Assembly (NCBI RefSeq): GCF_002113885.1
Contig: NW_018403833.1
Coordinates: 62,001-126,000 of the forward strand
Source of the DNA: Mizuhopecten yessoensis
Lineage: Eukaryota
DNA length: 64,000 nt
Reading direction: 5' to 3'
The notes beneath the pieces were generated by a model that did not search any database, was not told the DNA's origin, and was given only the letters and a program-made list of their open reading frames with translations. Positions 7,355 through 34,910 of the stretch are shown one piece after another; positions within the stretch are counted from its first letter, which is position 1; each line of letters opens with the position of its first letter. The position numbers and the translations under genes were made by a program.

Positions 7355-8441
7355 ATGACTCTTGCCCTAACATTACGCTTGGTGTCTTTGAGATTAATCG
7401 TCACACATTTACGAGCTGCACATGTACAGCAGTCAAGCCGTACATATGTCGATACTCTCGCGCAGAGGGGGAACCCGGGACTACGGGCCCCCAAAAAGCT
7501 GTGGTGGGCCAAGGAGCTGACGCCCGATTTTCACGTCGCTGGCAGGTTGTCCGAACGACAGATCAAATACGCAGCGGACGGAGGATTTAAAAGTATTGTC
7601 TCGTTGTATCATTACGATGAACCATCCAAAATCGGAGAGGAATATCTCCCCACGAGTGAGGAGGCTGCCGCGATAGCGAAACAATCCGGACTACAGCATC
7701 GGGTCGTATTGGAATCCGGAAACTCTGATTGGGCTTCAGTCCAAGCTGTGGATAAGTTGTCTGCCATTATGCCGACCCTAGAAAAGCCGGTTTTACTCCA
7801 TTGTCATCGTGCGTATACCATATCATTTGTAACCATGATGCACATGGCCAATGCTTCAAAACACAACCCTAATTACAAACCTCAAGTCGACATTCAAAAG
7901 TTCTACAAGATGGCCGCCGCCATGGGGATAGATTTCACCATGGACTTTACGCAAAAAACTGCCGCAGAAATCACCGGCGAAGAAATTCCGGAGAATTTGC
8001 CGACACCAAACGTGGTTCCCAAGGTTTGGTACGACTACTGGATGGCCCACCCCGTGTACAAAAACTGGTACACGGCTGGCCAGATCCGTGAAAGTCACTT
8101 AGAAAAGTTACAAATGGACGGCTTCATCCACGTTATCAACATGAGAATGGGAGTTGATGACGAAAACGGAAATCCTTCTCAAGAGCAGGTAACTCTCATC
8201 AATGTCAAAGACGGTACACCGACGTACGGAAACAAAGAGACTGGACCGCGACAAATACCGAACACCTTGAAGAATCTTGTCGTTGACTCTGAAAAGGACA
8301 ATTCTTATGTGGCCAAGGATTCGAACGCCAACTTCGAATCGAGAAACCCAGGAGAGTTCGGAGACGAGATCGGGTATAACGAAGATCGGGAAAGACAAGT
8401 TCTGGAAAAGGCAGGTTTCCAGTATCATCACATGCCAGTCT
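7355..8441 (+). CDS. Tandem DUF442/Blh-like (PTP-fold sulfurtransferase/phosphatase-like) protein, large coding exon 1A. Encodes a putative signal peptide, domain 1 and most of domain 2; probably splices to 19676.
   Basis: ATG at 7355 (MTLALTLRLVSLRLIVTHLRA), open frame, motifs AGRLSERQIKYAADGGFKSIVSL, PVLLHCHRA, TAGQI...GFIHVINMR and EKAGFQYHHMPV. Phase-1 donor GTAAGT at 8442. Colinear with exon 1B at a constant offset of 9750. Confidence 0.8.
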
Positions 8442-10689
8442 GTAAGTATTACTACCAAATATTTGTTTTATGTATTTATGAAAGTTTGATATCATTGCAT
8501 TTTGTGTGTCACCAAACACTTCTCTTTTATTATATTATGTAACTGTTGCTGAAGCGTTTCAGTTAATGTAGTGTATATTGTTTACTCAAAAGCAGCACGA
8601 GAAACAGATTTTTGATGTTGAAACACTTGGATACCTGGTCGGCTTACTGAAGAAGAATTCACATCACGAAAATATATGTGTACTTGTTATAGATATCGAC
8701 CTCGTTTGTGCTGCAACATCTTCACTCAATCAAATGTGATGTTCAGGTCATTGGATAACATCAGATCCGTTATGCAAAGAGCATGCAGACTTGTGATATA
8801 CAATTCTAAACATATTTACTCTGTTTTGTTTGTTACATTCGTAGAGATGATTTCCTAACAAAGGTCTTTAATATTACGCATAATCATTAGGTAAACATTA
8901 CAATTGATATGATGATGGGTACTGCAGTGAAAAGGTATTCTATATTGTGACAAATAGTGTACTGGTGCCAATATTGTATTGCGTCATTTAGACAGCAAAC
9001 TAACATGGCATCATTTTGTGTAAAATCCTGAAATTTTAACTGACTCCGGTGTTAGATTTAGAATGTTTACCACAAATCGATAAGAACCAAAAATCACCCC
9101 ATCTTTAGTATCGGTGTCACAGTTATGGCATTTCGGTACTTTTTGAAAGAGTTTAACGAACTTAAAATCTTTTCAACAAAGTCTTTGTCCAAAAACAATG
9201 AAATATCCAAGGAGGTCCATAGCAACTATTTTACCTAGATAAAAAAAATATATATATATTTTTTTTTTACCTGTGATGAATTTAGATCCGATTTTATAAC
9301 ACAATCGATTTTATATCTGGCAAAGGTCTTTCTTCTACAACGAGTCTAGTAAAATTTTAAACAATTTTAAAACAAGAAAAGTTAACACACCTGTAATCTA
9401 TTTACACTATGTTACCTGCACAAACTGTTTTTGTGGTACAATCGTGCATAATCATCAAGCCGGATCTTCAAGGCAATGTTACATACCTGGGTTACCTGTA
9501 TATTTCAATGTTATCCCATACTGATATATCTTTTCTGCTTCAGTTCCTTTGTAATGTTTTATAAAATTCTTGCAAAGTTTATTTTTAAACGTTTCGTAAA
9601 AAGGCTAAGTCATGTGATCTCATTTGTAGCAAAAATAAATGTCAGTACGGATATGATGTTTCTTTTATCTTAAAGTTTCATTCATAATTGTGAAATCACC
9701 AGTTATATTCATTCCCATAAATTTTTGGCCAAGTCATGGCAGTTAAATAATGGAATGCTATAATACAAATAAGACAAATAAATGCAATATGTGTTCAACA
9801 ATTCGACAACATGTCAACAAATGTCAAGAGATAATCAATTATTTTGTTGTCGTTTTTTTCTTTTTTTTTCTTATGCTACTATTTTCCTTTTTTACAATTG
9901 TAAGCTACGTTTATTGCGAGCAGTCAAACATGTCAGTAATTAGGACAATAGTATAGCTGACTAAGTACACATCTGTATTTTATTTTAAGATTTTAATCAA
10001 CACCACATTGTTGTTGTGGTTTCTTTATTGGGAATAATTACTATTACCCCTTACTTTAAGTTATTATATCTCTACCTAAATTAGCGAGTGTGTGTGTGCT
10101 GATTTAATGATATGTTATTGTAAATAATATTAACTATTGAATGGGGTGGTGAAGATTTAAATGATTTCGTGAAAATTCTTAGCTGCTCTGAGATATATCA
10201 TAAACGTCGAAATATGTTAGCAATATTAGATGAAGACCTGTTTATTACTGAAGGTTTTTATTATGAATACAACAATGTAATTAAAACTAAAGTCGTGTAT
10301 TAGAACAAATTCAAATACGTATTTTCCAATAATTTTGACAAATGTAATAATGTACATTTCACCTTTCATACTCAGTTTTGCATGTCTGCGTGTGGTCATG
10401 GTATCTTAGCAACTGGAACGAAAGGACAGATAATACCCTTAACAATTATCATTTGTTATCGTAAAATGTATTTTTGGAGAGAGAAAAGTGTTTTAGATGA
10501 AAATGGTTTACAAGGTCGATATAATTTGAATTAAATACTTATATGAGTTTTGGATGCACATCAATTAAATTGACTCACGGTATGTTTTCAAAAATAATTT
10601 CAATGAATGGAGATGATGACTTAAAATGAATGATTCAGCAACATTACTATCACATATATTAAGAATAATGTTGCTCCGATAATTTGACA

Positions 10690-10812
10690 CAGAATAATCA
10701 ACATCATATAATCAACACCTAATAATCAACATTTAATAATCACCATTTGATTATCAACATCATATAATCAACATGTAATCATCAACATGTAATAATCAAC
10801 ATTTGATAACCA
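10690..10812. repeat. Short degenerate tandem repeat (~14-bp ATAATCAACAT unit)
   Basis: ATAATCAACA recurs about 8 times. Confidence 0.6.
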
Positions 10813-13800
10813 AAATTAAATGTAATAAAGGAGCTGGAATAAAGTAAACCAGCCTAATTTCTAACTGAATATCATTCATCGGATACTCTTTACCATCTCT
10901 ATTCAAATCGAGATGCTTTCCTATATACGCAATGGTGTATGCATCGTTATTAACTGTCTTCACACAAATAATGATACTGCATTTTCGGACATAATCTATC
11001 TGTACGAGATTTGATATAAACTACGGGTTGCTTTCCTATACGCGCAATTTTTAAATTGTTTGCACATACATTTGAAATAAAATAAATATTCACACAATAA
11101 GTGATGCCTTATCTCTGTCAACGTCAGGACAAAAACAATATTTTTATAAAAACGAGATTTGGTCACATGCATGTGCATAAAGGCAACAAACATATGGTAA
11201 TTTTTTGGCATAAAAAGGTAACTTAATGTCAAATGGCTAATTCGAAGTGCACGTGATTTTTATTTAGTGCTGATGAAAAGCTCTGCACTTAACATTTATC
11301 ATTAAGGAACTTCATCGCACTAAATCAGTTTAAGTGTACATGTATGCAGTGTTGTAAAATTTGACTGTTTGAACAGTTAAAAGCTCAAGGTCAGGTGTAA
11401 CGAATGGCATATTGTGAGCTCGCTTTTAGCGTCCTATAATGTACACCCGAAACGTGCATGTGTAAATATCCGGTGTCATGTACGAAGCAGGGTGCACGAC
11501 CCATAATCTATTATGCATGTGATATCAGGTTTGCTTTGCAGATGTAATTCCCCTGCTACCAAGAATTTTACATGTTACCTGATACCATTTTCCCCTGTGA
11601 TAGAACACAGGACCGTTCTTTATTTGACCTTGTGTTAATATTAAATTTCTGCAAACTTCGAAGAGACAGTTTGTATTCAGAGTTTGGTAATGATAATTAT
11701 TTGAGGTTCTTATGTTTCATATGTTTTTGATTGGTGGTGTTATCCATTATCGGTAGTGTGACCGGGTCGAGTGTCACTCTACCGTGTTCATGCTATGGCA
11801 TTTATGGCAAACAAGTATCTACCACCAAAACAATAATGTTTCAGGGAATGTGCAATAGTAGATTTTACAATATATAATATGCTAAATCCTATTGGGATGA
11901 GCTTTTGGATTTAAGAGAAGCATTTTTAATAACGACTGATTTTTACAATACTTCCTATCGAAGTGGTATTCAGTGCTTGTAAGTTGGGGTTTTGTTTGTT
12001 TTTTTCAAATTCAGAAAACCATACAAACTGTCACCGTCAAATGTCCTCCACATTAGTCGCCTCTCTTACGTACAGGTAATGCAGTGATATACTGCAGTTC
12101 TATTGATTCCCCGCATAAACACATGTAGTTACATATTGATAAAAAAATTGGTTGGCAAATGTTAACTAAAAATCTGAAGACGATTTAATTGCGTTGAGTA
12201 CTCACCTAAAAACGGCGCAGTTTTCTTGTCAAGCGTGAAGTTACTAAAATATTTAAGTATGGCGTCAATAATTACTTTCTTCAGTAGGAACTTTCTTAAT
12301 ACAGTAACGTTTCGAAAATATGTAATTGACACAGATAAAAAAAAAATCGTTGTATACCCGAAAATATCGGTTTTCTGTAATACTCATGAAAAATGTGTGG
12401 AACATGAATTTATTCGAATACACTAAAACATATCACCAGTACTCTGGGTAAAATAACAGCCAGGATTACGTGAGGTCATTGCTTGTTTAAATGCTAAGAC
12501 GTGTCGTGTAATCCAGGGGTGTATTTTATATAGAGGCTGTATGTAGACTCATACCAGCGTCGTTGGTAATGAAAGTGTGCAGCCAAATATAATGGGTCTG
12601 GGTAAAACGCTTATCACACTTAACATACACTAACCCTAGAGGAGATGATACTACGTGCTTTCTGATACAAAATTCACCAAATAATTACCTTACTACCAAC
12701 CAATATTGTGTTACATTTTTGTGTGGTTCATGATTGCCACAAGATTGCATGATATATTTGTTTATTGTGAATATGTGTGTGTAAGTTTCACAATAAATGC
12801 GGTTTTATTTTATTGTTTCACAATACATTGCAAATTTACAAATATTTGTATTAACATAGACAAAAAATACTTACCAGCACCCGTCGGTGTTCTTTATATA
12901 TACATTCTGTTACTTTACCAGGGTTCTCTATCGGAGTTGTCTCGAACTACGCTTAAGAATAACTACGGTAATGATAGTTATTTTACCAACTATATACATA
13001 ATTATCTGTGATAATTTAAGATACGTTCTTCGTGTTTAACACGTGTCCACGGTGTCTTGCATCACTGGTGAATGACATATATATAACAGCAGGTTTAAAG
13101 ACGAGTTCAATCGCGATATAAGAAATGCTTCACCGAAGGTTTTCTTCTTCTGGAATGTCATGGTTTTGTGTTTTGTACTAATACATTCTCAGCTCTTCGG
13201 CTGTCTAAGCACTTGCATTTCGACTTAAATAGTCTTTCGTTCAATAATATATAAATGCACCGGGTATATACTTCAATGAAAAAACCCATTGTATTCTGCC
13301 CGTAAATTGCTGTTTGGGAGGAGTCATGCTTTGCTTATAATCGATAAGTACACATCAACAGATGCAAAAACAATCTTGATAGTCTTGATTTTTTGCGGTA
13401 CTTGTATAATATTTCATACTTGGTTAATTTTTTTAATAATCACATGATGATTTTGATATGGTTTGAAGTACATAGTTATCAAAAAATATTTCAAAATGAT
13501 CATTATTTGGCTCCTATATACCGAGGTAAAATATTGATCGACGAGAGGATATGTTTACATTCCTCTGTTAGGTCAAAGAAACCACGAGTTAGATTAAACA
13601 GTTACTGTTGCCTCTCGTACAGCTCTCGAGTCCATACTCCCAAGGCTGAATTCACAATTTGTATAATAAGCAAACTGTAAGATAAAGTTTGAATTACTAT
13701 GATGATTGAAATATAGCTACGCTGCATATTTATTCTGAATTCATAGAAAACACCATTTTAATAGAGACGCATTATTATTTATGCATTTTTTTTCTCTTAT

Positions 13801-16690: not shown

Positions 16691-17101
16691 CAAAAGAGTA
16701 GACAAATAATATAAGACCAAAGACACGAGAGATAAGAGATGGTGATTTGTCAGTCTATGAGTTAGTACGTGCCACCACAATCCCGCCGCACACGTACGCC
16801 GTGTGCTTTCGTGACATGGTAACACGCACAGCTGTGTGCAGTGGACACGGCAAAGGACAAGCTAATGTAGCAACGACGTAACCTAGTAAATGGCGTTGAT
16901 TCCATTTAAGGCGAAATATTACACGTCTGTATCAGGATGATATAATAGTCCATCGATTTTATGGGGTTTTTGTGTGTGTGTGAATGTTCAGTATTAGAGA
17001 ATACACGATCGCAGGAAACCAGCTATAATTAGCCACGTCATCATTCGGGACCTCTCGGATTTATAGGAATCAAGTAAGGTACATAGTGATTGTTCGGAGG
17101 C

Positions 17102-18191
17102 ATGAATCTTGTTCTATCATTACATTTGCTGATATTGCGATTGGTTATAACGTCTTTGCGAGCAGAATATTTACAACACACGAACCGTACTACCTATGTC
17201 GATACGTTCCTACAGAGGCGGGCCCCGGGACTCCGGGCCCCAAAGAAACTTTGGTGGGCCAAGGAGCTGACGCCCGACTTTCACGTCGCTGGCAGGTTGT
17301 CCGAACGACAGATCAAATACGCAGCTGACGGAGGATTTAAAAGCATTGTGTCCTTGTTTCATGATGATGAACCATCCCAAATCGGCGATGAGTATCTGCC
17401 CACTAGTGCCGAAGCTGCAGAGATCGCACAACTAGCCGGTCTAGATTATCGAGTTGTACTGGAGTCTGATAATTGCGATTGGGCATCAGTAGTAGCCGTC
17501 GAGAAAATATCTGCCATTATTCCAACATTAAAAAAGCCTATTCTCCTCCATTGTAATCGAGCTTACACGATAGCATTCACGACCATGATGTACTTAGCCA
17601 ACGCTTCAAAACACGACCAAAATTTCACACCTCAAGTCAACACAGAAAACATATTCAAGATGGCCGCCGTCATGGGCTTAGATTTTACTATGGACTTCAC
17701 GCTAGAGACTGTAGCGAAAATCAACAGCGAAACGATTCCGGAGAATTTACCTCAACCAAATGTGGTGCCAGAGGAATGGTATGACTACTGGATGGCCCAC
17801 CCCGTGTATCAGAACTGGTTCACTGCGGGACAGATCCGCCAAAGTCACCTGGAAAATATACAAATGGCCGGCTTCATCCACGTTATCAACATGAGAATGG
17901 GAGTTGATGACGAAAACGGAAATCCTTCCCAAGAGCAGGTAACTCTCATCAACGTTAAAGATGGCACACCGACGTACGGAAACAAAGAGACTGGACCGCG
18001 ACAAAAACCGGACACTTTGAAGAATATTGTCATTGACTCCACAAAGAACAATTCTTTTGTGACCAAGAATTCTGACGTCAATTTCGAATCGCGTAATTCA
18101 GGAGAGTTTGGAGACGAGATTGGCTATAACGAAGACCGGGAGAGACAAGTTCTAGAAAAGGCGGGTTTCCGATACTATCATATGCCAGTCC
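17102..18191 (+). CDS. Tandem DUF442/Blh-like protein, coding exon 1B (gene model 17102-18191, 19676-19789, 21519-21694; 459 aa, ends in KDEL)
   Basis: ATG at 17102 (hydrophobic leader MNLVLSLHLLILRLVITSLRA), PILLHCNRA, TAGQI...GFIHVINMR. Phase-1 donor GTAAGT at 18192. Confidence 0.88.
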
Positions 18192-19675
18192 GTAAGTGCT
18201 ATATCATACTGGTATTCTGTTCCTTTTGTATTTTATCACAGACATACACACTATACATCTCTGCTCTTACAGTATGTGGAAAAAATACACAAATTCGTTT
18301 ATTGCAATAAAGAAATTAGGACAATTTAATAGATTGTTTTTACAATATTTCAAACTTGACATAAAGTTATAAAAAGTTTTGGAAAAATATTATTTACATT
18401 TCCATCCCTTTTGTCATACCAGTTAAGAAATAAGGTCCAGTGCTGACTCAAAATGTTGCTCTTTGTTGAAGATTTTTTGCCATGTTGAAGTTAATTACGC
18501 CATATTTGGTCGTAAGTAACAATCCTGCTTGGGGATTTTTTTCTGTAATTAATGTGTTAAAGTATGATTTACAAACATGTTTTGACTATGATTGTACACC
18601 AAAACTTGTTGGATTTTTTTTATATAAGTCTAACCAATAGCACGAGTTTAGTTGATAGATGGAATATGTCGCATTTTCTTTTCACTGTCCTACATATCCG
18701 ACACACGATGACACATTTCACCGGCACTTGTGATTTTGAGACTGTTTTACGTGTGAGACCACTTAGATGGTTCGTTAGATTTACTTTTTGAGATTATTCA
18801 AATGTTCGTGATTAGTTGAGCTTAACTGTCTTTTAGATGTTTACTTTTGTACACCTTGTATCCCCTTGTCATTGATTACGCTTGAGTTTAAAAATATATA
18901 TATGCCATTAATGAACCTGTGGTCGTGACAAGCTTGCACGCTTTATTTAATTAAAAACAAAATTGAACATTTGTCGATTTGATTTTTAAAAATCTTAAGT
19001 AAAACATTTTCATGAAGCCGCGTAATAACCTTTAAAAGGCCTTAAAGGTACCGTAATTCTCCTATAGAAACCAAAATATAAAGCTAAGGATAAGATACTG
19101 CACTGTTTTAAGTGGTAAATGCCTTCCTTGCTAGGTGACAAAAGGAGTAGGAGGAACATTTATAAACAGTTGGTCATGTTTATTTCGTCTTTGTACAATT
19201 GAAACGCATGTGAGCTGCATGGTAATATTTCAGAAGATAAATATTTCTGGAAATTCAGGACTGTCCTACTGATCACGACCTTTGTATTACTAAACTCTCA
19301 TGTAATGCCTTACATTGCTGACACGCACGAAGAGAAGTAACTTTCACCCAAAATGATATTTCAGATATTTCAGTCTTAATAATTCTGAAATATTTATAGT
19401 AAATTCTTTTTCGTCATATATCCTCGGGTGTTGTACTTGCGTTTCATTGGCTACAGACTCTACTTGCACTCGTGTCTGTAATCCGAAAATAAAATCTACC
19501 CAAGAAAACAATGACGTTATCCATGGCCCCATCTCATTTTCTTAGCCTAGTGATCCGGACTTGATTCGTTACAAATATTGGAATGTGCCATGTCCCCGGC
19601 TGGGCATCAAAATGTACAGGCTTATCCCATCATCATTCATTTGATCTAATTATACCACGTTTTGTGTATTTGCAG

Positions 19676-19789
19676 TGTCTGGTGGAAAGTTTAGCCCAGA
19701 GTTATTCGGGAAATACAAGGACAAGCTATTGGAGATCGGGAGAACGGGAGAGCCTGTCCTCGTCCATTGTGCTAGCGCCCACAGAGTCG
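19676..19789 (+). CDS. Tandem DUF442/Blh-like protein, exon 2 (domain-2 Cys loop PVLVHCASAHRV)
   Basis: TTTGCAG acceptor and GTAAGT donor; 114 bp, phase 1/1. Translates LSGGKFSPELFGKYKDKLLEIGRTGEPVLVHCASAHRV. Same length as, and homologous to, 33172-33059. Confidence 0.88.
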
Positions 19790-20214
19790 GTAAGTAGACT
19801 ACTACATACCTGTCCACAGCGGTCAGTTGTCTATAGAGGTGGGCTATACGGTTTTAGATACGTTTCCGATAATACGTAATCTATCGATGGTTGACGTCAT
19901 TTTGTTTGGGAATACGAAATTTACCAAACAAGAAACCTTTTAATGACATACCTGGTTTTGTGTTCGTGCTAGGTAGTTAATGCAATATATTTACGATTGC
20001 CACTTCCCACCCTTTTCGTCAATCCAGAGAATATTTGATGATTTATATGTATCACGCTTAAGCACTGTCGTATTCTCTCTTAATTTGGTTTATTTAGGTT
20101 TGATTTGTATTTTTCGAAGAAGAAACTATATCTGAATTTGAACTTCTTTTCACCCCCTCCATGTTATTCGATTAGTATTGTGATCTGGACCCAATGAACA
20201 AGTTATTTATAGAA

Positions 20215-20735
20215 GTCGCCTTTCTGTAGAAGTCACCTGTCTGTAGTGGTACTCATTCTGTTAAGTTCTCCTGTTACATGGAGTAGAGGTGACCTGATTG
20301 TAAAGGTCACCTGTCTGTAAAGGTCACATGACAGTAGAGGTCACCTGTTTGTAAAGTTCACCTGTTTGTAGCTTTCACCTGTCTGTAAAGGTCACCTGTC
20401 TGTAGGGGTCACCTGTCTGTAAAGGTCACCTGTCTGTAGGGGTCACCTGTGTGTATAGGTCACCTGTCTGTAAAGGTACAACCTGTCTGTAGAGTTCACC
20501 TGTCAGCAGGGGTCCGCTGCATGTAGTGGACCCCTGTTGGAAGAGGACACCGTTCATTTTGTAGAGGTTGCTATCTTTAAAGGTCACCTGTTTGTACAGG
20601 TGACCTGTCAGCAGGGGATTCACCTGTCTGTAGAGGACACCATTCATTTTGTAGAGGTTGCTATCTGTAAAGATCGCCTGTTGGTAGAGGTTATCTGTTA
20701 CTAGAGGTCGTAATATATAGAGGTCACTTGTTTGT
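20215..20735. repeat. Intronic minisatellite, 17-bp unit GTCACCTGTCTGTAGAG
   Basis: GTCACC occurs at 20391, 20408 and 20425, and so on. Confidence 0.85.
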
Positions 20736-21518
20736 ACATTTTACATCAGTGAAAGATGAAAGTTAAATGAATGAAAAGGAAGACCATATATACAGGTGTT
20801 TGAAGGACAAGGAATACTACATCCAGAGCATACGTCACTCTGGTCTTAAGACATTTAACCTATTTGCATCTACAGCCTTAATCGTAACGACAGGTTAACA
20901 ATTTTATAGATGTCACCCTAAGGTAACATGTCTGTGGAAGTCAGCTTAAGGACAGATAAACCAATGTGTGAATGTTACCTCAAGATAGATATGTATACGT
21001 CACAGCCTGCCAGGATAGGTAATCCAAATAACCAATAAACCAGGATATAGAGGTCCTTTCCGGATAACTTGTTTTGCAGGTTCACTCTAAGCACGTTAAA
21101 ACCTGTATAAAGCGGTCAATTTATATACTGGCCTCTTTGTTAATGCGATAAACGTACCACAACCTATTTGTACGTTATAATTTGTCTTGTTGTATTACTG
21201 GACAGATTGTCGTCTTTCCTTTGGTTTCAGCGTCGTTTCAGTTCCTTTTGTCGTCTTTCTTTTGATTTTGGTGACTTGTCAGTTCCTGTTGTTGTCTTTC
21301 CTTTTGTTTTGGTGTCTCCTAGATTCCTGTTGTTGTATTTCCTTTTGTTTTCGGTTTCTCTTCAATTTCTGTATTATTATTAGTATGCCGACATTGTGTT
21401 CCGATTTTATAATTGTGGGTTGATGTTTTGGTATTTTATTTCTCTATTTTACATAAAATATCATTTCTGTGATACATAACTCCACTTCAACACTGTTTCG
21501 CCTGTTTATTTTCCACAG

Positions 21519-21694
21519 CTTACATGACTGTGCTGGCCGCCGCACTACAGTACAACAAAGACCTAGACTGGGCTCTACAGAGGACGCGCGAGCTCGGATT
21601 CGTCGTGAGCCCCACCGAGCACAAGGACGTTTACCTTATGTACGCTGCCTGGTTAGACTCCAACAAGTTCAACTCTACTAAAGACGAACTTTGA
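21519..21694 (+). CDS. Tandem DUF442/Blh-like protein, terminal exon 3 ending in the ER-retention signal KDEL
   Basis: TTCCACAG acceptor. Translates AYMTVLAAALQYNKDLDWALQRTRELGFVVSPTEHKDVYLMYAAWLDSNKFNSTKDEL-TGA. AATAAA at 21901. Confidence 0.88.
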
Positions 21695-23980
21695 TCATCG
21701 TCGTAAAAAATCCTGATCGATTTGTAGTTAATATGAATTGAATGTGTGGTCTATCTTGATACTTTTGTAAATATATGAACTTTATTTTGATACAAAAAAC
21801 GTAAAAATAATCCCAGCTACAAAACAAAATGGTAATTTTTTAATTTCATTGAATTTACTTTGACCTAATGAAAATTAAGATTAAGAATGTGTAATTTCTA
21901 AATAAAAACAAAAGAAAATATAGTTTAATTTTAATAAAAATACAATTTTCAATTGTTTTTATTTGAAAGATTTCAATTATTTTCATAATATTATAAATTA
22001 TGGTTATCTGAACGTGAACTTGTTGACCCCTACATTTGTTAGTATTAATCTGTATATCAATAAATATCTGTAAAGATTTCATTCCACGCTAGCGTCAAAC
22101 AGTAAACAACTACCCATTTTAACTTAAGTTATTCGTTTTCCAGCCGTTTCAAATTCCATATCGTTATAACATCGGAACAGAAAACAATATTTGACAGAGT
22201 TTTTATACAGAAACTGTATTTTTGATTTTATATAACTACATAATGTTATTGTTTTAATTACTGTTCAATGAATCCCCATTTATTGTTAAACAGTGTGAAT
22301 ATGTCTCACTACCCTAGATCTAATGCAGAATGTCTCTTGGTGTTGAAAGTTTAGTGAACTGGATGTGTGGACTGGAAGAGAGAAGTATATGACCCGAAAG
22401 TATAACCTTTACGTTTGAAATGCGTTGTTTCTTTCATTAAGTTAGAATGTGTGTTGAATATAAAACTTATAAATTATACGCCATTTTTCCGGGTGCTGTT
22501 GTAATCTTGTTTTATCAGTATATTTAACTAAAAATTCAAAATGTCTTAAAACCTATATGCAATATACATTAACTTGATGGTTTCTGTGTGCTTCAAAATA
22601 CAAAAGAAAATGTCTCATATACAGTCAATGGTATAAGGGTATAACGTCACATTCTTCACGTATATGCATAGTTTAGACAGAAAAAACAAAGGTCACAAAT
22701 CAACTACATTAATTTTCATGTTATTTTTTTTCATTTTGTTTTATTTTTCACTTCTTTTGAGCTGTTAATTATCATGTTTCTGTCCTTTTAGCGAGAAATG
22801 CGAAATATATACAGTACAATGTAAATGTACGAGTTATCCCCCTTCTTTCGTGATTCTTTCCAAGTCATGTATGAAAGTTGATTTGTTTGTTAAAATGTTA
22901 TCGTAATAAAAATAAAAATTATATCTAATGTTAAAGAAAAATAATAAAGCTGGATATGTATTAAATACAATTTCAAATAGATTTTAACTGTCTTTGCATT
23001 TGAATTTTCCTAGTAACTGTCGCTGTATATACATACGCACGACATACATAAATTATACATATATAAAACGTGTATCGCTCATATAAAGGTGAAAAAAATG
23101 AGACTCGTCGTAGCAATTATTGATACTGACATCATAACGCACTCAAACACAAACACTTGTTCGTGGTTTTAAATACCGTGATTTTTTTTTTAATACAATA
23201 TGCCGAAATTGCATTGATATGGCATGTAGGACAATCAAACAAGACTTGTACACAAACAGAAAAACACGTCAAATCAAAGAGGATTCACATAAATCACTCA
23301 CTATGTTCCTCAACGCTTAAACGGTCATACTCTTGTGACCTTCTCCCCTACCCAATCAGCATGACATCAATAATATTATCTGTATTTGACACAATATTGA
23401 TCCGAGTATTAAATGAAAGGTGATTGACTAAAATCACAACTTATTTTACAACATTGTGTATATATTTCCAATTCACTGTTCATTTTAAAATTTTCCGACG
23501 TTATAAGCCCTTTCCAACTTAACTAATAGAGAAGAACATCTTCATTAGAGAATGTCCCCTCCTGTATATAATCACTACACTTCCGGCGTACTGAACTCTC
23601 CAGTATACATTCACCGTAGAGTATAGTAGCAGAACAATGAAGTCGTATGACTTATTTATACAGGTATCCAGATATCACAGGTTTCAGATTTGACAGGTTA
23701 CAGCTTTTGCTCGTAAGTCGTTGCCTTGTGCGAACTGTTCAGCACTTGATCGATTTATGAGGGTAGAAGAACGACGCCTTGTCTGTCACAAAATAGGTTG
23801 GTGGCTTGGATGTATACTCTTGAGGAAACGTGTTATGGTCAACAGTGTAGAGCGCATCAGAACCCATCTGAGAAGTCAAACATCTTAGTCCGGACACTGC
23901 CGTTGCCGAAAATGTATCGAACAAGGATTTGTTTTGATAAACTGTTAATGAATTAGTAAGGAACTACATTCTAAATTTCA

Positions 23981-24859: not shown

Positions 24860-25104
24860 TCAGTATGGAGGAGGAGGTTCGTTGTCCTCAGAGGAGGGCT
24901 CCAAATCCTCATCCTCATCATAATCCTGAATGAGGATTTCGTAACGAGGGGGCGGGTCGTATTTGTCCGCGTCATATTGATTAGCCGCTCGTCGGAGCTG
25001 AACAGGGTCCATTGCGCATGCCTCAATGTTGACAATTGTCTGAAGTATGATGTCATTGGATGTCGAAACACTGTCACGATGTCTGTGTTGAGTGTCATAC
25101 TCAT
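24860..25104 (-). CDS. SPEC3/stum-family paralog 3, exon 3 (acidic tail with PPRY and terminal PPPPY)
   Basis: TTGTAG acceptor, phase 1. Translates DEYDTQHRHRDSV...KYDPPPRYEILIQDYDEDEDLEPSSEDNEPPPPY-TGA. The true frame differs from the ORF-track frame. Confidence 0.75.
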
Positions 25105-25509
25105 CTACAACACGAGAATGAGGAATGAGATGAATATATCTTTATCTATCTAAAATCTTACAAAATCCTATCAGAACTATAAGTAACAACTAAGGCCGAA
25201 ATATAATCAATGTTGTTTGATATTTCTTGTCAAAACATATATGAAAATCAAAGAGATATTGATAAATTTACACGATTTAACTATAGTTCAAGCAAGTTGT
25301 GGTTATGGTCTGAATACTGAATGAAATGCAGTAAAGATGAAATAAAATATAATAATCAAAAATAATAATTCCGGAATATTCTCCGGCATCCGGGTCCCTT
25401 TGTGTATACTTTAACGTGTACAGTATATTGGCAAACCTAAACGGTAATAAAGAAAGAAGATGCATGTACATGTAGCCTAAAATGTGTATTTGTGCTTGTC
25501 GAGATACCG

Positions 25510-25850
25510 AACTGGTTTTGTTGTAGGATTAAACGTTCTAGTAACTGTGAAGTCATTTAAGGACATGGTTCCATGTTTGTAATGTATGTGTGCCGAAGGA
25601 AGGATGTGTTGGTGTAATCATCTCCTAGCGACTGCGCGGATCTGATATCGACTTCAGAGCGCTATCCCTATGAATTACCATCATGAAGGCAGCCAGCAGA
25701 ATATCCCTCCCGGTCACATCATACTGACAACGGGTGAACCAGTTGTTGCCGTTACCTTTAATGCTGAACGTTAGACAGGGAATAACAACTACCATTTTAA
25801 GGAATTTGGAATGTCCCGGCCTTGGGACAGATCCCATTGTGTTCTTAACT
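25510..25850 (-). mobile_element. Degenerate Meta-core SINE copy inside an intron
   Basis: Homologous to 14795-15160 (CCGGTCACATCATACTGACAACGGG...GCTGAACGTTAGACAGG). Confidence 0.6.
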
Positions 25851-27054
25851 TGGACGAACGGACAAAAATAAGATTTGCCAAGGAAGGCGCTTTGAAGCAA
25901 AAAATGTGATCTGAAGTAGAGAGAACCTGTGATTGGCCCAAATATTGCAATGGGCGCAATACATTTATATTGGTCGCATTTGTGTCTCCAAGCAGAGGGT
26001 ACAAAAACAAAACCCAATTATACAGGGGGTCCCACATGCAATGTGTAAATATGTTTCCGGGGCTCAAAACAACTACCTATTTTAACTAAAGACATCACAA
26101 TTGTCTTTATAGAACATGGTTTAATATTGAACGGTGTCGTTGACTAAATGTTTACATACACCTTACAATGGAAAGGTAACGCTGAAAGGCAGATTTTAAT
26201 TTGGCATAACTCACATTATAGAATTAATCACTGACATGGTGAATTATACACACTGTAAGTATGTCTGAGTTGCATAGCTGATTGTTGAACACTTTGTGTA
26301 AATAACACGTGTTGTTCAGCGCACTAAGAGCATTGTCATAACTCATTTGGGCGCTATGTAATTAATATATAGGATTTTCATCTCTGTGTTACGGTGAACC
26401 TCCAATGGCATGACCACCATTCGAGCAGGGTCATTTTAAAGCTTCTCATACCGGTTCTAATAACGTGAGTCAGCCAAACATGTTAGTGACGTTAGGCTGT
26501 TCCAGGAATCTCGTTTGCACTGACAACACATACTCTTCCAATATCGAAAATATAAGGAAATACATAGAATAAATATATTTAGATCAACAATAACTATACA
26601 ATTTAGGATGTAATGTATTTAATTCATTTTTTAATGTTCATACCGGAACGAACATTGAAACAAAAAGCTTTTCAATCCTTATCCTAATGGTACACGTTGT
26701 TTTATCCAGGATTTGTTCCCATCATGATCACAGGGACCTGATAATTTGTTACAGCTATTCTTGGAACTAAAGAAATGTGTTCAGAATAATTTTACACTTT
26801 TTTAGGGGTTAAGATTAATTTTCGGTAAAAGCGTCCTATATGCACTTAAAATGAGTTCTCCTTCCGCGGACATGATCTCCGTTTCCTCCAAAAACACGCC
26901 ATTTCCGACTTTTTCGCGATCATAGAGCCACTTTTGGCATATTCATAAGGTTGACGTCAGCCACGTGCCAAAACCCTTGGTTCCTGTGATCACGAGATGC
27001 CATAATTGACCGGAAGGTGCTATCTATTAAGCACCAAACTTTTCGGTACGTTAC

Positions 27055-27240
27055 CTGCGGTGCGAAGGAAGAGGATACCCCACATACAGCTCCATAACCA
27101 ACCCAGAAGGAATACAGGGGTGAGAAGAATTTGTAGAAATCCGATCACAATGTTCGCCGTACAGCTAGCACACGCCTCCGAGCAGTTCCTAACGCCGTGA
27201 CGATCACAGCAACACAGTGCAAATCCGGTCAAAATGGTTC
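27055..27240 (-). CDS. SPEC3/stum-family paralog 3, exon 2 (Cys-rich membrane segment)
   Basis: 186 bp, phase 1/1, AG/GT boundaries. GTILTGFALCCC...IGFLQILLTPVFLLGWLWSCMWG matches the stum/SPEC3 motif LQ..L...GW.WS..WG. Confidence 0.85.
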
Positions 27241-29017
27241 CTGTATAAACATATAAGATATACATATTTACTTCCGGTTGTGTAAGTAACTTCCGGTTTA
27301 AGCGACATATGCCTCTTCTTGATAAGAAGACAGTATTACGAAATATTTGGATGACGTAATGTTAAATACATTTAGGAACAAACACATATTTTGTAATAAT
27401 TCAGAAAAGACTTATCTGAAAACCAAGGAAAAGATTTCTTTGCACACTGAACTATTGCACGGATCTGATATTCAACAATTTCTATATGTAGTACCTTCTT
27501 CCCCATATTTTGGGCATTTTGTTATACTGAAATAACTAATCACGAAAGTTTTTGTTTCGTCATATTAACTGACGACACTTTAATGTTGGCATTTTATCTC
27601 ATTTGGTTCCCAATTCACTATCTGGAATATCAACATTTCAAATTTTGAATGAGCTATATCACTTTTTCAAACTAGTGATATTATTTTAAATGAGATATAT
27701 CAACAAAGGTATCAAAGAAATAAAACAACGCTTCATGCTGTACATAACTACATATATGTATACATATAATTATATTAGTTTTATTATGATTGTATTTGAT
27801 TTTCATCTTTTGCATTTTATTTTTTAATTACTGGCCTTATACTATCTGCATGGATTTCATATTTAAATCGTTTATATTTTTAATATCAGTTACTGGCCTT
27901 GTTTTATTTCTATCTTGTAAAGAGTATGTTTGACTGTGGTCAACGTTGTATACAGATTTAACCTAACTGTGTTCAATAACATGTCACAAAAATGACGTCA
28001 ACATTTGTCGTAATATTATTAATACAATTTAAACATCCCAATCGTGTTTTCCCCAAAACTAGTAAATCATTAATTTACATATTTACTAATGTACTAGTAA
28101 TTTACTGATAATGATTTTATGTACAAATTTTTACTAATACCGTTCTGTCAACAAGCTTGGGCTGATTTCGCACTACCATGTAATACATAGTGCATACAGT
28201 TTAAACAGACTGCATTTGATAAAAGTTCAGCTTATATTTAATTCTTGTTTCATCTAATCTGTTTTGTAAAAATAACTTTAAAATGTATGTTTTGGTAGCT
28301 TTAAACGATAATAACATTTTTACAAGAAAATTTGGCAGCAATTAGCATACTTGTTGGTGTAATGTCGGTCAGATTTAACTTCCGTAATATTTTTTTACGC
28401 AAATTAAAGGAATTCCTTTTTATCAGACTTTACTTTTGCTCGGCGGGTTAAAATTTATTACATAAGATTGTTACGTTATACATAAAAAAAAACTGCCCAG
28501 TATTTTGTAAAAACACGTTAAGATGTCTTTTATAACAAAAATGTAATAAGGTCACATCAGTTAAAACGTCACCAAAGCTTGCATACCTTTTTTTTAAGTT
28601 TCACGATGGTATATGTACGTATCTGTATGTTCATATACATACTATCGTTTGTTTGTTTGTTTATTTTTTAACTACAAGTAAACCTTGTCCTAAACGAGTC
28701 TGTCCTACCTCGATATGAAACCCTTAATCATTTCTCTTGTACTATACACCTTGTTTTCATTATGTACTTATTATATACATGTATATAAATGACCTTGACA
28801 TAAAGGTAGCAACCTTGACCTTGGTCAACGCGTAGTTACCTTCCCCTGTAATTGCTTGTACGAGGGGCCACTTCCTCGAGCCTAACAATTCAAGAGATAA
28901 TACAACAGAGATTATCGGCTGCATTGAGTTCATCGATTTCAGTCAGGTGATAAACACCGACGCAAGTGTATACAGCTGTACGCATGCGTTAACGGAAGTA
29001 AGGTATAGTTTTCTTAC

Positions 29018-29201
29018 CGAGTCCGGGAAAGGCGAAGTTCGACACACAGCAGACGATGGCCACAGGTTTGGGGAGGGCAGCCACGGCCATCGTATGTGTT
29101 GGAGTTGTGTCGCCGATGATGGAGCCATGTCTGTGCGTCCTATCAGTATGAACACTTCCGGTCCTTGTGGGTCCTTCCGGTATCACACTTCCGGTTTGCA
29201 T
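29018..29201 (-). CDS. SPEC3/stum-family paralog 3, exon 1 (model 29201-29018, 27240-27055, 25104-24860; ~204 aa)
   Basis: VAALPKPVAIVCCVSNFAFPGLG followed by a GTAAG donor, phase 1. The start ATG at 29201 is the most upstream in-frame ATG and is uncertain. Confidence 0.8.
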
Positions 29202-29332: not shown

Positions 29333-29339
29333 TTTTATA
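29333..29339 (-). promoter_or_regulatory. Candidate TATA box of stum-like paralog 3
   Basis: TATAAAA on the minus strand ~135 bp upstream of ATG 29201. Supported by position only. Confidence 0.3.
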
Positions 29340-31413
29340 ACTAATCCGCCATACACACAATTCCACATACTGATGCACCATTGTCACCGTTTAGGAATTT
29401 GTTTACACCTTGTCAAAATAAAGTACGTTCGTTGACGTAGAAAATACATACTCGAAAGAGTGTTGACAAATAGGGTTTCCATTGAAACTTAATCTGTTTC
29501 CAGACTCTAGTTACAGGTAACGAAATGGTTGTGCAGTTCACCGAATTCCGCTGATGTGTTTCATTCAGAAAGAGGGTCCCGGTGTTGTTTCCCGACTGTC
29601 CTGTACATGTAGATACACAATTTTACTAATAAGCTAATTTGCTGTGTGGATGATAAGCTCTCGATGACAAAGTTTCCATACTATTTCTAACCTTTAGTAC
29701 AATGCAATAAACAAGGGTCGAAGTTTTAACATGTACGAACTAATAACCGCCCTACATGTGTACTGTATAACACTGAGTTGTAATTCCAAGTTCTTAATTT
29801 AAAGTACGTACAAAACAGTGTGTATACACATGTGTTCTGTTTACCGTAAGTCCGCGTATGTGTGAAATACGTTTGACCATTTAAATTTCTAAATAAATAA
29901 CCGTCATAATATTTTCCAACAAGCTTTATTACCTTTCACTGAATACGATGTAGTACAAATTAATAAATATCATACCCATGCCACGTTTAAACATGTATTT
30001 ACTATACACATTAATTATATATATAAAGCATTACAATATGGGTCAAAGAAGTAATATAGACGGTAAAAGCCCATATAACACTGGATCCTAATGGAGGTAT
30101 GTCAGCATTGCAATATGTATATATGTACATAAAATTTTGGACGATTCAATGACCGATATCGCCAGCAGTGCGAAGGTTTATAACAAAAAACGGGTTACTT
30201 CCCCTGACAACGAGTAAACAATTCAAAACAAACATTTAAACTCCATTGTATATGTTAACAGTCGGGCCGGCTTAAATAGCTGACATAAATACTCCTGCAG
30301 GTTATATAGGTAAACTTAGGCTTTACCTCAAGGATTGTGGGCCGGCTACATTTCATTAATTTAGCTATTTTATAACTATCTATTTTTAGGATTAATAGTT
30401 ATAAATGTAAGTTACTGGCAGTCAAGAGCAATGGTATTGATTTAAACATATTTATTGCCCCAAATTTGAGCAGAGGATTAGGCGCAAGTTGTATCAACTT
30501 ATCAACGCCTTTTCCTCTAATACAGTACATATTGATATGTACATGATAGCATCTAACAAGGCATACAAACTATATTTTACAATTATTATATTTTACTTAA
30601 AATCTGTTGCTGGATTTGATGAAAAGTTGCACGTGTCTGAATATAATCTGTATTGGTATCTACGGACAGATTTTCATTCCCAAATAGAAATAAAAATAAA
30701 TTTACTGGATATATATTCAACGAGTTTATGTTTCGAAACAGCGTAATTCGTGCTGTATTAAAAAGTTTCCATTCTAAGAATGACCCTCACAAACATCCTC
30801 ACAACAATGTAACACCCGATATTTCATTAAACACCAGCTTAGCTTGTTTTAGTGGATAACGCAATGCATAATATTTTATATTCTATTGTATTGCACATAG
30901 ATTGACTTTCGTTTGTCTTTCTTTAGCATTACTTTCAGGTTCCTCGAAATATTAGCTGAATGAAATATGGAAATTTGGAATTCGGGCTGTGTCCTGCAAC
31001 TGTATACAGGGTCCAAGGTGTTCGTTCTATGTGTGGATACGGGAAGAACCAAAGAGAGAAGTATGGTGGTTTGAGGACACGGAGGTCTCGCAATTGAAGT
31101 TGAAAATAAACAGTTTTAGAATGCTAGGACCCCGGTATTGCTCCAATTAATTGAAACATTTTAATTTCGAAAATACTATGCAGCTTTCCTTTCAGATGTT
31201 AAAATGTTTCCGACATAAACAGGACAGAAACCGAATTGACTCGATTAATGCTGTAATTTTGTTTATCGTGAACATATGATTAATTTAGAATACTAAATAA
31301 TATGCGAAAGGGCTAACGCTATTTCAATACCGACATCATCATAAATGAAAGATTTTTTGTCTAAACATTTTCTTCGGGTTTGGTATAAGTATGGATTATG
31401 AGAAGACCTTTTT

Positions 31414-31557
31414 CACAACCAATAACAATTTCTATGTGACGTTTCGATGACTAGTACGATCTGTACACTGTCACCTTCATCAGACAAATGATTCAGGTGA
31501 CAGTGTACATATCGTACTAGTCATCAAAACGTCACATAGAACATTTGATTGGTTGTG
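31414..31557 (-). mobile_element. Inverted-repeat remnant of a Penelope-like element carrying a minimal hammerhead ribozyme motif
   Basis: Minus strand reads TGT-CTGATGA-A-GGTGAC...GTCATC-GAAACGTC-ACA; an inverted, decayed second arm lies at 31496-31557. Confidence 0.55.
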
Positions 31558-32059
31558 TCAAAATGAAAGTATTTAAGTGATTTCTGCAGCAATTTAGTTT
31601 CTGGGTAACGAAACACGAAGCCGAAACACACTGTTTAGATAATACACATGTATGAATTGCTCAGTTCCTACAATACCGGGCCCGCGACCGTAATGATGAT
31701 AAAGAGATCTAATCTGAATATATATAGTAACAGAATAAACGTGACCGTATTACATTCAAGGTCACGGCCGTAATATTCTGTACCTGATACAGGTATGTGA
31801 AACAAATTCCAACTGCAGCGAAATAGCGACCATGTTTTGTAATCAAAGTTGCGATTGTATTTCCACTTATTAACATACCTGTAGATATAGAGTATAGCGC
31901 CCGGAGTTCCTATACTTACAAACAGCTAAGCGTTATGAAGCAAACCCCCTTGATAAGAATTCTTCAGTCCTCGGAGAAAACAAGCGGATCATTACCTTGT
32001 AAATTATGTGTTATGTTATGTTGATTTTAATATATTAAGAGAACATGACATGACATACT

Positions 32060-32310
32060 CAAACATTACTTTACTCAAAGAATAATTGATATCTGGAACA
32101 GTCTCCCACAAGATGTTATTTCATCTTGTAAAGTATTTGACTTTGAGAAAAACTTCTGGAAAGATCTTAAGTTGAAGTATGATCATACAGCGTCTTATTA
32201 TAGACTTATTTTATGTTTACCACAATGTACATATTTCAAACTATATTGATGTGGATATAGAGGCAGCAATGCGTGTGACCACTAATATTCTATTAAATCC
32301 TATTAAAATT
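32060..32310 (+). mobile_element. CR1-type LINE 3' fragment
   Basis: Translates KHYFTQRIIDIWNSLPQDVISSCKVFDFEK, a typical CR1 RT C-terminus, followed by a tail-like repeat. Confidence 0.65.
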
Positions 32311-32553
32311 TACACTTTACAAATGTCTAAATGATGTTTTAAGCATTTCCTTATACAGACGACCACGTGGTCGAACAGTGATTAATCTGACCCGTTTCAA
32401 AATTTTCAGATTTTCATAACAAAAACACTTTGAAGTTTGTTAGTTTCATTTAAATCATAGGCAAACTACAGTAGTATGCATGCTGAATACACATCGTGTT
32501 TACATTAAATATTGTGATGGACTTCAGCCCCGACTTATAAGCATGGTGAATCT

Positions 32554-32726
32554 TCATCTGCGGCCAATCTCGTTGCCACTGGAATCGGTCAGCCAGGCGA
32601 CATACATACGATACACGTCCGGCGATGTCATTGGCCCGACTGGGAACCCTATCTCGTCAAGTTTGGACAGAGCCCAATTCAAGTCCTGACCGTCCTGGAG
32701 CGCAGCAGCGAGGACCGTGAGGTAGG
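32554..32726 (-). CDS. Tandem DUF442/Blh-like paralog C, terminal exon 3 (no KDEL)
   Basis: CGTCAG acceptor. AYLTVLAAALQDGQDLNWALSKLDEIGFPVGPMTSPDVYRMYVAWLTDSSGNEIGRR-TGA is homologous to 21519-21694. Confidence 0.87.
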
Positions 32727-33058
32727 CTGACGATCAAAGACAAAGCAACACTAAGTTACAATGAGAGTAAAGCCAATGTAAAGACGCGGAGTGACTATGG
32801 TGTTAGTACTGTTATACTTATTTTAGAGCAGTCAAAGTTTAGCGAACGAACGAGTTTTGACAGATAAGCGCTTTGATAAATTGGCGAAACAACAACATAT
32901 TCAATAGAGAAAAGTATACAGAAAGTTCCACTTCTAAAGTGGAAAAAACGCTTACATAAGACTTCCTCTTAAATATTACTTTTACAGTAATTTACAGTAA
33001 ATGTATGCTATTTTAACCACCTGGACATCTTCTCTGGATTTTTTTTATTATATATCAC

Positions 33059-33172
33059 CTGCACGCCTTGAGTCGGAGCAGTGTACGAGGACTGGTTCTC
33101 CTGTTTCTCCGATCTCCAGAAATTTGTCTTTAAACTCGGAAAACAACTCCCTGCTGTACTGGCGACCATTGT
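33059..33172 (-). CDS. Tandem DUF442/Blh-like paralog C, exon 2 (PVLVHCSDSRRA)
   Basis: 114 bp, phase 1/1, TTTTATAG acceptor and GTGAT donor. Translates DNGRQYSRELFSEFKDKFLEIGETGEPVLVHCSDSRRA. Confidence 0.88.
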
Positions 33173-33844
33173 CTATAAAAGACAGATTAAAGATGATTAA
33201 TGTTTTTAGCAACGATTTAATGTCAATACATTGTTACAATACGGATGGTTGAGTCACAGTTTAAAACATCGGTCATGATTGGATCAACAGAAATGACCAA
33301 AATCATTCGTGGTGATGCGTCTTGCAAATTTGATGGCAGCCTTCTTTTCCTACTCTTGAGGAACCATGAGGACACAATAAGTTTTTTCCATTGCAATACT
33401 TGGGACATTTGTCTTATTCCCTCACTCTCCTTGACGTGGTGTTGTTCTTAATCTCCGCGTCATATGACGTTTTCGTTATTTGTGGAAATGACGTAGATCC
33501 CAAATACGAGATACATCAAGAAATGCTATGCATGTCATATTATATTTATATTCGTCCATAATTATTGGACGACTATTTTCAACGCACACAAAAAGGGAAA
33601 AAGCCGTAACATAATTCAAAATCGACTCAAAAACACACAGGAACTGGGCAGACCTCAAAACAAAAAGGAAGGCAGCAACAGTAACTGTGGAGACACAAAA
33701 ACAAAAGTAAATACAACAACAGGAACGAAGGAGACACCAAAACAAAACGAAAGGCGTCATGATCATAACCTCCTTAGCAATTCTAAAACTTACTAGACAC
33801 CAAGGTTTCCTAGTTGAAATGTGAACAGCAAGGACACAACTTAC

Positions 33845-34910
33845 CTAGAGGGAGATGATGGTATGTCAAACCAGCCTTCTCCACAGCAACTTGCTCCAGT
33901 CCCTCATTGTATCCGACACCGTCTCCAAACTCAAGGGAGTTCCGCTGCTCGTAGTTCACGGAAGACGTAGCCGAAATATAAGTGGTCGCTTTGTCAAGGT
34001 CAATTCGAGTTCTTACTAGCGTATCCGGTGATTGACGTGGCCCGATAGTGGCATTTCCGTACGTGGGCGTTCCGTCTACGATGTTCAGCAGTGTCACAGT
34101 TTCCTGTGAGGGTTGGTTGTGTGTCGAGGTACCTAAACGTAGGTTGATCACGTGTTTGAAACCGGTGCCGACAATAGCAGGTATGTGTGTGGAAAGAATT
34201 TGTCCTCCAACAAACCAACTTTTGTAAACGAAATGAACCAACCAATAGTTTGACCATTCAACCGGATATGCAGTGGTGTTCGGAAACACTTTCGGTAGAG
34301 GACTTCCGGTGATTTTTGACACGACTTCCGAAGTGTTATTTGCTGTAAAGTCTAGTCCCAAAGATGCAGTAACTTCGTAGAAGACATCACTCGTAATACG
34401 AGGCCGGAAGTTAGGATCAACTCTTGTCTGGTTCGCCATATACATTAATGTTGCAAATGTTATTGTATGCGCACGATGACAATGCATTAGAATAGGTTTC
34501 TCCATTTCGGCAATGGCAGATGTCAGTTTCTGTACAGTACTTACTTTATACCAATCATCCTCGGAATCAAGTATAGCTCTAAAACCCATATTTACAGCAT
34601 ATGCCATCGTCTTTGCCCCATCTGTCGTCGTGAACGTTTCCAGCCCCAAATTTCCTGGGGAATTGAACCGGAAGAGCGTAATGATGCTTCTGAAACCTCC
34701 CTCGGACGCATATTTTATTTGCCTTTCCGTAAGTCGTCCGGTCAAGTACAGGTCAGGAGACATCTTCCGGATCCACCAAAGTTTCTGGAGAGAATTCGGA
34801 TTTACACGGTCCGGAAAAACATCACGGAACAGAAACCGTTTCTGATGAGCTGCGTTACAGGCGTAAATAACAGTACAAATAAGAACTATTCGAAACTGTA
34901 CGGTGGCCAT
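33845..34910 (-). CDS. Tandem DUF442/Blh-like paralog C, exon 1 (model 34910-33845, 33172-33059, 32726-32554; 450 aa, predicted secreted)
   Basis: Signal-peptide-like MATVQFRIVLICTVIYACNA; TGRLTERQIKYASEGGF, PILMHCHRA and GFKHVINLR; several N-X-S/T sequons; phase-1 GTAAGT donor at the same position as in exons 1A and 1B. Confidence 0.88.

Follow-up and report, generated by a model that had tools for sequence, protein, structure and literature searches.

A 64,000-nucleotide stretch of the genome of the scallop Mizuhopecten yessoensis (contig NW_018403833.1, positions 62,001 to 126,000; hereafter the window) carries two genes, LOC110456117 (gene 1) and LOC110456030 (gene 2), whose products, on predicted structures, are built of two DUF442-like protein tyrosine phosphatase (PTP)-fold domains in tandem. 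They belong to a real, expressed and conserved eukaryotic variant of this fold that is apparently undescribed: literature searches found no paper on these genes by gene identifier and none on eukaryotic DUF442 by title or abstract, in agreement with an earlier note, made from the sequence alone, that knew of no characterized member. There is an even chance that the proteins are soluble, two-domain, DUF442/Blh-like enzymes of the secretory pathway that move sulfane sulfur.

The earlier note had counted three paralogous coding units. Three long open reading frames (ORFs) are indeed present (7355-8441 and 17102-18191 on the plus strand, 34910-33845 on the minus strand), with products of 458, 459 and 450 amino acids (aa) to which the exon lengths sum correctly, but the genes are two, as the first two frames are alternative first exons, A and B, of gene 1. 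Exon A (7355..8441, isoform X2) encodes an Arg-rich leader, domain 1 and the first two-thirds of domain 2; exon B (17102..18191, isoform X1) encodes a signal-peptide-like leader and the same domain segments, and its translation is 100% identical to isoform X1, XP_021362352.1. The domain-1 Cys codons lie at 7802-7804 and 17552-17554, respectively. Shared exon 2 (19676..19789) holds the domain-2 Cys-X4-Arg loop (19765-19785), and shared exon 3 (21519..21694) encodes C-terminal helices and ends in KDEL-stop at 21680-21694, all on the plus strand. Gene 2, on the minus strand, has the same layout: exon 1 (33845..34910; signal peptide, domain 1 and most of domain 2), exon 2 (33059..33172; domain-2 loop CSDSRR, 33083-33063) and exon 3 (32554..32726; C-terminus IGRR, without a retrieval signal for the endoplasmic reticulum, ER). 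Splice sites in both genes are all GT-AG and phase 1. Exons A and B share 81% DNA identity, and exon 1 of gene 2 is 42-44% identical to either.

Transcript evidence came from RNA reads mapped over 16800-22600 in four runs, with junctions counted in three of them. The junction from exon B to exon 2 (18191->19676) was crossed by 6, 1 and 0 reads and that from exon 2 to exon 3 (19789->21519) by 44, 10 and 117, while 93, 4 and 76 reads had loose ends before 19676 that are identical to the final 30 bases of exon A (8412-8441). Because reads join both A and B to 19676, the two are alternative first exons of a single gene, and isoform A is the major form in the RNA samples read. Exon A as a separate gene with its own exon 2 was rejected: tblastn, blastn and a motif scan found no second exon private to A between 8441 and 17102, and reads join A to the shared exons. 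In run X22, 27 reads leave exon 2 after 19789 into sequence that differs from exon 3 by 7 mismatches (agreement 0.79); no better match than exon 3 exists within the window, and the loose end is probably a divergent allele or read noise, not a new exon. RNA depth persists and climbs beyond the gene 1 stop (21695-22600), either as a long 3' untranslated region (UTR) or as overlap with the UTR of a convergent Spec3-family gene.

Both isoforms also occur in Pecten, Argopecten and Ylistrum, the first two of which also keep the order A, B, shared exons, Spec3. Exon A sequences form a single clade (SH-like approximate likelihood ratio test [SH-aLRT] 99), and the first-exon duplication is therefore older than these scallops. 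Divergence between A and B is greatest in the leader, at 50% identity vs 74-89% in the domains. The arrangement resembles the UGT1A and protocadherin type, with duplicated large first exons, apparently their own promoters, and constant 3' exons; it differs in having two variable exons only and in being scallop-specific. Two observations on related genes belong here. In Argopecten irradians (L015 20122-23500), the last 62-68 bases of exon 2, comprising the catalytic loop and donor, appear in ~40 tandem copies in intron 2, real or an assembly artefact. The gene of Aplysia californica (L005 10001-24581) yields isoforms of 541 and 464 aa; their first exons, with starts 10.5 kb apart and different sequences, lead to a common C-terminus, possibly an independent case of a duplicated first exon.

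Searches for fold and family used individual exons and full-length database proteins rather than a joined spliced model. AlphaFold (AF2) with 66 homologs gave a model with a predicted local distance difference test (pLDDT) of 91 and a predicted template modelling score (pTM) of 0.89, in which the two halves (~46-210 and 228-452) each match minimal PTP folds; this upholds the tandem DUF442/PTP assignment proposed earlier. The only meaningful family matches, for domain 1 and domain 2 each and mostly below cut-off, are PF04273 (BLH_phosphatase/DUF442) and TIGR01244/Blh. PF04273 scores are 26.6 for B (E 7.6e-6, narrowly over the gathering cut-off of 26.1), 21.5 for A and 15.7 for gene 2; the TIGR01244 sulfur transferase model gives E ~1e-7 per domain, at 18-32 bits under a curated cut-off of 85.85. 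Sequence search of the PDB gave no match, and rhodanese (PF00581) was found neither by Pfam nor among the top fold matches. The nearest DUF442 structures to the scallop halves are 3gxh/3gxg and NMA1982 (2f46) at Z 14-15, with archaeal Tk-PTP at Z 16.5. For a chrysophyte-class relative, the model places 3gxg at the top of 48,161 chains (Z 16.3), within 1 Z of Tk-PTP, KAP and 2f46. NMA1982 and the Shewanella DUF442 (3gxh/3gxg) are the closest solved domains overall (Z 14-16, template modelling score [TM] by target 0.68-0.75) and have a CX4R loop; they differ as single bacterial domains at 16-20% identity. Among Atlas models, PF04273 clusters come nearest, with TM up to 0.84; some carry a fusion to sulfide:quinone oxidoreductase (SQR)-type oxidoreductases. 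For the whole two-domain arrangement, no solved or Atlas structure matches (TM by query <=0.35). CDC14, the D1-D2 receptor PTPs and Mitsuokella phytase likewise carry two PTP-fold domains per chain, in CDC14 with the canonical loop in the C-terminal one, but have CX5R loops and a different arrangement (TM ~0.26, root-mean-square deviation 14-26 A).

Conservation centers on domain 2. C395 and R400 are present in 57 of 57 sequences, and R265, E278, E335, G337, D338 and G341 in all 66 of 66. E278-G341 lie within a 78-residue insert, a segment that measures 73-95 residues in animals and in the class with glycosylphosphatidylinositol (GPI)-like tails and ~31 in the chrysophyte class. The loops described earlier, HCASAHRV (19765-19785, gene 1) and HCSDSRRA (33083-33063, gene 2), are where they were said to be. 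In all groups the loop has six residues (CX4R) and not the CX5R of class I Cys-based phosphatases (PTP and dual-specificity phosphatases, DSP); in distant members it reads C-[RTA]-[TSI]-G-Y-R, which resembles CRTGTR in a DUF442 that has been assayed (PMC8533005). Of the repeated pattern described earlier, the two PTP-fold repeats stand, but the pattern is loose: GQI and NMR of domain 2 correspond to GRL and SLF in domain 1, whose loop, C-x-R-A-(Y/H)-T, lacks Arg at +5. More broadly, mollusc domain-1 loops follow C-[DN]-R-[GA]-Y-T and those of the chrysophyte class C-H-V-G-[YW]-T; the loop is Cys-X4-Thr, not Cys-X4-Arg, in 41 of the 43 ER-type mollusc proteins, and its Cys is present in 25/25 chrysophyte-class proteins. 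Standard PTP chemistry needs the Arg and is impossible for a Cys-X4-Thr loop. Four animal-type proteins (P0173, P0187, P0205 and P0206; L010, L011) have a domain 1 with Cys-X4-Arg, which suggests that both domains may once have been full sites. P0169 (L012 10001-11314), an intronless full-length member of the animal clade with a GPI-like tail, has Ser for the domain-2 Cys, as does P0168 of Owenia.

Several considerations favor sulfur transfer. TIGR01244 sulfur transferase and Blh are the only curated models that matched per domain. The domain-1 Cys-X4-Thr fits the sulfurtransferase-type Cx4R/T loop (PMC10135228), whose terminal Thr is required in TST (PMC8533005). A general acid is not conserved: in the WPD-equivalent loop, no position after H-x-P is Asp or Glu in more than 20 of the 43 mollusc proteins, or in any of the 9 GPI-class proteins. 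Finally, the DUF442 domains that have been assayed are sulfurtransferases (PMC5823870, PMC9163753, PMC8533005), one with a thiosulfate:cyanide kcat of 4.89 per s and an essential loop Arg (PMC8533005), and NMA1982 turns over a phosphatase substrate at only 4.4e-5 per s (PMC10716126). Under such a mechanism, Cys395, a thiolate in the six-residue loop with Arg400 at its end, would take sulfur from thiosulfate, polysulfide, glutathione persulfide or a protein persulfide and hand it to an acceptor (thiol, sulfite or cyanide) in a ping-pong cycle. The insert with its invariant acidic residues may cap the site and set specificity, and domain 1 (C-x-x-G-Y-T) could provide another site for holding sulfur or for redox chemistry, of importance chiefly in an oxidising lumen.

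Other points weigh against that assignment. The location in the secretory pathway was judged by sequence rules (hydropathy and termini), and an oxidising lumen or cell surface is an odd setting for a free catalytic thiol. The TIGR01244 score of ~30 is far below 85.85, no sulfur-metabolism gene is fused or adjacent, and the fold comparison is a tie (DUF442 3gxh at Z 15.3-16.3 vs archaeal Tk-PTP at 16.5). The invariant acidic insert, absent from the assayed DUF442 enzymes, could alter the chemistry; E335 or D338 could act as a general acid; and the domain-1 Cys is also missing in a few signal-peptide members. Some of the same features would suit a Cys-based phosphohydrolase whose substrate is small or extracellular (a nucleotide, inositol or sugar phosphate, polyphosphate or phosphoprotein), with domain 2 active, domain 1 serving in regulation as a pseudo-domain, as it does in receptor PTPs, and the general acid supplied by the insert. 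Nearly every group, the mitochondrial-like ones too, retains E335, D338 and G341; the top fold matches include archaeal PTPs, KAP, PTPMT1 and PTP-like phytases; several Pfam phosphatase models match distant family members; GPI-like tails in annelid, hemichordate and unassigned members suit an ecto-enzyme; and the phosphatase activity of NMA1982, a CX4R DUF442-like protein, depends on Cys and Arg (PMC10716126). We consider this rather unlikely, since the loop is one residue short of CX5R, NMA1982 turnover is extremely slow, the conserved Asp is missing from the WPD-equivalent loop, and retention of Cys-X4-Thr in domain 1 of molluscs and chrysophytes is poorly explained.

Entry into the secretory pathway, proposed in the earlier note, is strengthened by KDEL and xxEL ends, of which the KDEL of gene 1 had gone unmentioned there. 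The pattern of a soluble ER resident, a signal peptide by hydropathy with a KDEL-type end, is present: 55 of 63 full-length homologs have a hydrophobic leader, 47/63 end in EL or EDL, and most mollusc members combine signal peptide, sequon and xxEL end. The sequons described earlier, MANAS, LANAS and MANQT, do lie at equivalent positions in the three scallop products, and N167 is kept in all ER-type mollusc proteins (43/43). Isoform B would thus enter the ER by its signal peptide and be held there by KDEL, and the gene 2 product, with a good signal peptide and no retrieval signal, is predicted to be secreted. In several annelid, hemichordate and unassigned proteins, small residues precede a hydrophobic C-terminal tail that resembles a GPI signal and may be one.

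A candidate regulatory element lies upstream of exon B. GCCACGTCA (17032..17040, plus strand), ~70 nt before the start codon of exon B, is the reverse complement of TGACGTGG, the core of the unfolded protein response (UPR) element (UPRE) bound by XBP1 and CREB3-type factors (PMC4644985, PMC3209646). It is conserved in three scallops (Yesso, Pecten and Argopecten) at -58 to -73 from the B start codon and absent from the 600 nt upstream of A exons, and it may drive exon B as a UPRE; the chance expectation is ~0.001 such 8-mers per 100 nt, for a motif spotted post hoc in three related species. Such an element, the KDEL-type ends of most mollusc members, the loss of the domain-1 Cys from mitochondrial-like paralogs and the fact that the only two cysteines of isoform A are the loop ones could also be accommodated by a thiol-redox or folding helper, whose loop cysteines would swap disulfides or persulfides with each other or with ER clients at little small-molecule turnover. 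This is improbable: the anion-binding site made up of invariant R265, E278 and R400 is typical of catalysis, and GPI-tailed and mitochondrial-like forms argue against ER clients.

N-terminal leaders, reported earlier as hydrophobic, exist in all three products, but that of exon A makes a poor signal peptide, with 4 Arg and a longest uncharged run of 8. In all four scallop species (4/4) it has Arg at 8, 13, 20 and 29 and no acidic residue before 33. A small home-made classifier for mitochondrial-like leaders scored A at 0.96-0.97, Yesso B at 0.62 and gene 2 at 0.64; the amphipathic moment of the A leader, however, is only 0.22-0.28, and the sequon and domain-1 Cys are strongly conserved in A. 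No upstream in-frame start that would extend the leader was found in three scallops, where the upstream frame is not conserved. Mitochondrial or dual targeting of isoform A is conceivable, if somewhat doubtful.

Eleven mollusc-type proteins have Arg-rich, weakly hydrophobic leaders (e.g., ending RSMST or RRLSSS) and no EL end where the end is known. The domain-1 Cys is present in 0/11 of them vs 37/39 comparison proteins, a contrast that is descriptive, as the group was picked by eye on these same traits and kin share traits. The sequon is gone in 9 of the 11; two from the oyster clade, with borderline leaders, retain one nearby. A tree with these paralogs as one clade was rejected (approximately unbiased test, p-AU 0.00011), and with it a single origin: mitochondrial-like paralogs from mussels fall with the ER copies of mussels, and oyster-type ones with those of oysters. 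Mussel and limpet paralogs, perhaps oyster ones too, have independently gained such leaders and lost the domain-1 Cys, and are probably destined for mitochondria. Several independent mitochondrial-like leaders suit a small substrate found in multiple compartments. On the sulfur-transfer reading, domain 1 would decay in copies retargeted to mitochondria, and there the protein could supply the SQR/ETHE1 chain of sulfide oxidation; scallops would use two promoters to make a UPRE-linked ER form (B) and a form of ambiguous address (A; ER, mitochondrion or both). In its widest form, this reading envisions a eukaryotic PTP-fold sulfurtransferase family of the ER lumen and cell surface, copies of which molluscs repeatedly re-aimed to mitochondria, with the duplicated scallop first exons yielding a UPR-driven ER form and a mitochondrial or dual-targeted one. 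That widest scheme is unlikely as stated.

A horizontal origin in this animal lineage, also raised in the earlier note, does not hold. The family occurs in bivalves, gastropods, annelids (Owenia, Capitella and Lamellibrachia) and hemichordates (Ptychodera, Saccoglossus and Glandiceps). The long first exon of the scallop genes recurs in Ptychodera and Mytilus, as do both phase-1 introns: one follows Y-H-x-P-x, the other stands directly behind the CX4R loop. In a quick tree with a midpoint root, named bilaterian members form one clade (support 98), with molluscs (100) grouped with annelids (94). Chrysophytes such as Dinobryon carry the tandem form in a shorter-insert class that matches the animal class at a profile E of 5e-57, and one shorter-insert copy lies among intron-broken eukaryotic genes; the family is not animal-only. 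Recent bacteria-to-animal transfer was rejected on the introns shared with a hemichordate, a tree that follows animal phylogeny, and the chrysophyte tandem protein. The gene dates back at least to the common ancestor that molluscs last shared with hemichordates, and a far-back bacterial origin of the domain, or an old eukaryote-to-eukaryote transfer, may lie behind it.

An exhaustive profile search returned 1157 representatives at E <0.001, 99 of them <1e-30; no chordate, arthropod, echinoderm, plant or fungal member was seen among the part of the hits that could be named. Two pattern scans of GTDB genomes and a scan of viral contigs found no tandem relatives, weak evidence of absence as the scans need short conserved words. 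Weak multi-DUF442 matches (P0297 and P0299) lack the insert motif, and the broad alignment A2 was too divergent for scanning. All named hosts are aquatic, which would fit use of the Cys/Arg cradle for a different oxyanion chemistry, for example the reduction of arsenate or selenite or the handling of sulfate esters. Arsenate reductases are among the Cys-loop enzymes of related design (PMC10135228). There is no direct sign of such activity here. Known arsenate reductases of this type have CX5R loops, and we regard this alternative as very improbable.

How, then, does the candidate sulfurtransferase family compare with known systems? With the DUF442/Blh N-terminal sulfur transferase (PF04273, TIGR01244; Xylella Blh and the SQR-fused DUF442 of Cupriavidus) it has in common the PTP fold, the six-residue Cys-X4-Arg loop, the H-x-P-V strand and an R-x-D-G-E-type motif that precedes the insert and is literal in chrysophyte-class proteins. 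It differs in its tandem domains, domain-2 insert of 31-95 residues, signal peptide, N-glycan sequon and KDEL or GPI-like tail, in being eukaryotic, in its score far under the TIGR01244 cut-off, and in its freedom from SQR or dioxygenase fusion. Neither fusion nor linkage to SQR or persulfide dioxygenase was found; the neighbors are Spec3, Avl9/DENND11, SMYD and others. Because the TIGR01244 score and gene-context tests fail, the family should not be filed as Blh, and the PF04273 label is already attached to some members in databases. The rhodaneses TST and MPST offer another parallel, with tandem domains, a Cx4(R/T) loop and mitochondrial and dual-targeted isoforms, but have the Rhd rather than the PTP fold, and the review PMC10135228 describes no ER-luminal or GPI-anchored one.

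Studies of DUF442 have so far been confined to bacteria, where it acts as a partner in sulfide oxidation. A conserved secretory family hints at sulfur chemistry in the ER or cell surface compartment, and the literature searched holds no ER-luminal sulfane-sulfur enzyme of this kind. The eukaryotic two-domain version is a candidate for such chemistry within the ER or extracellularly, and for sulfide handling by molluscs and worms exposed to sediment or hypoxia; if this is true, the secretory pathway would have its own persulfide-handling enzyme. If the proteins are phosphohydrolases instead, they would constitute a new eukaryotic class of CX4R phosphatases. Pairs of ER-type and mitochondrial-type paralogs, together with the scallop two-exon switch, provide natural experiments on the role of domain 1.

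The remainder of the window holds several other features. A Spec3-family (PF15795) gene of 204 aa (24860-29201, minus strand) lies between the two family genes and is syntenic in Pecten and Argopecten; a second one occupies 55116-58966 (minus strand), with exons near 58232-58966 and 55116-55409. A Pro/Gln/Tyr-rich ORF (38528-38971, minus strand), without a Pfam match, contains tandem seven-residue repeats ending PPPPY and resembles the Spec3 exon end at 24863. An N run is found at 42194-42331. The C-terminal fragment of a long interspersed nuclear element (LINE) reverse transcriptase (DUF6451; 44417-44713, minus strand) continues into a 27-bp tandem array of 55 copies (43020-44520). An ORF with a sulfotransferase domain (62304-63176, minus strand; PF13469, E 9e-8) lies ~27 kb from gene 2.

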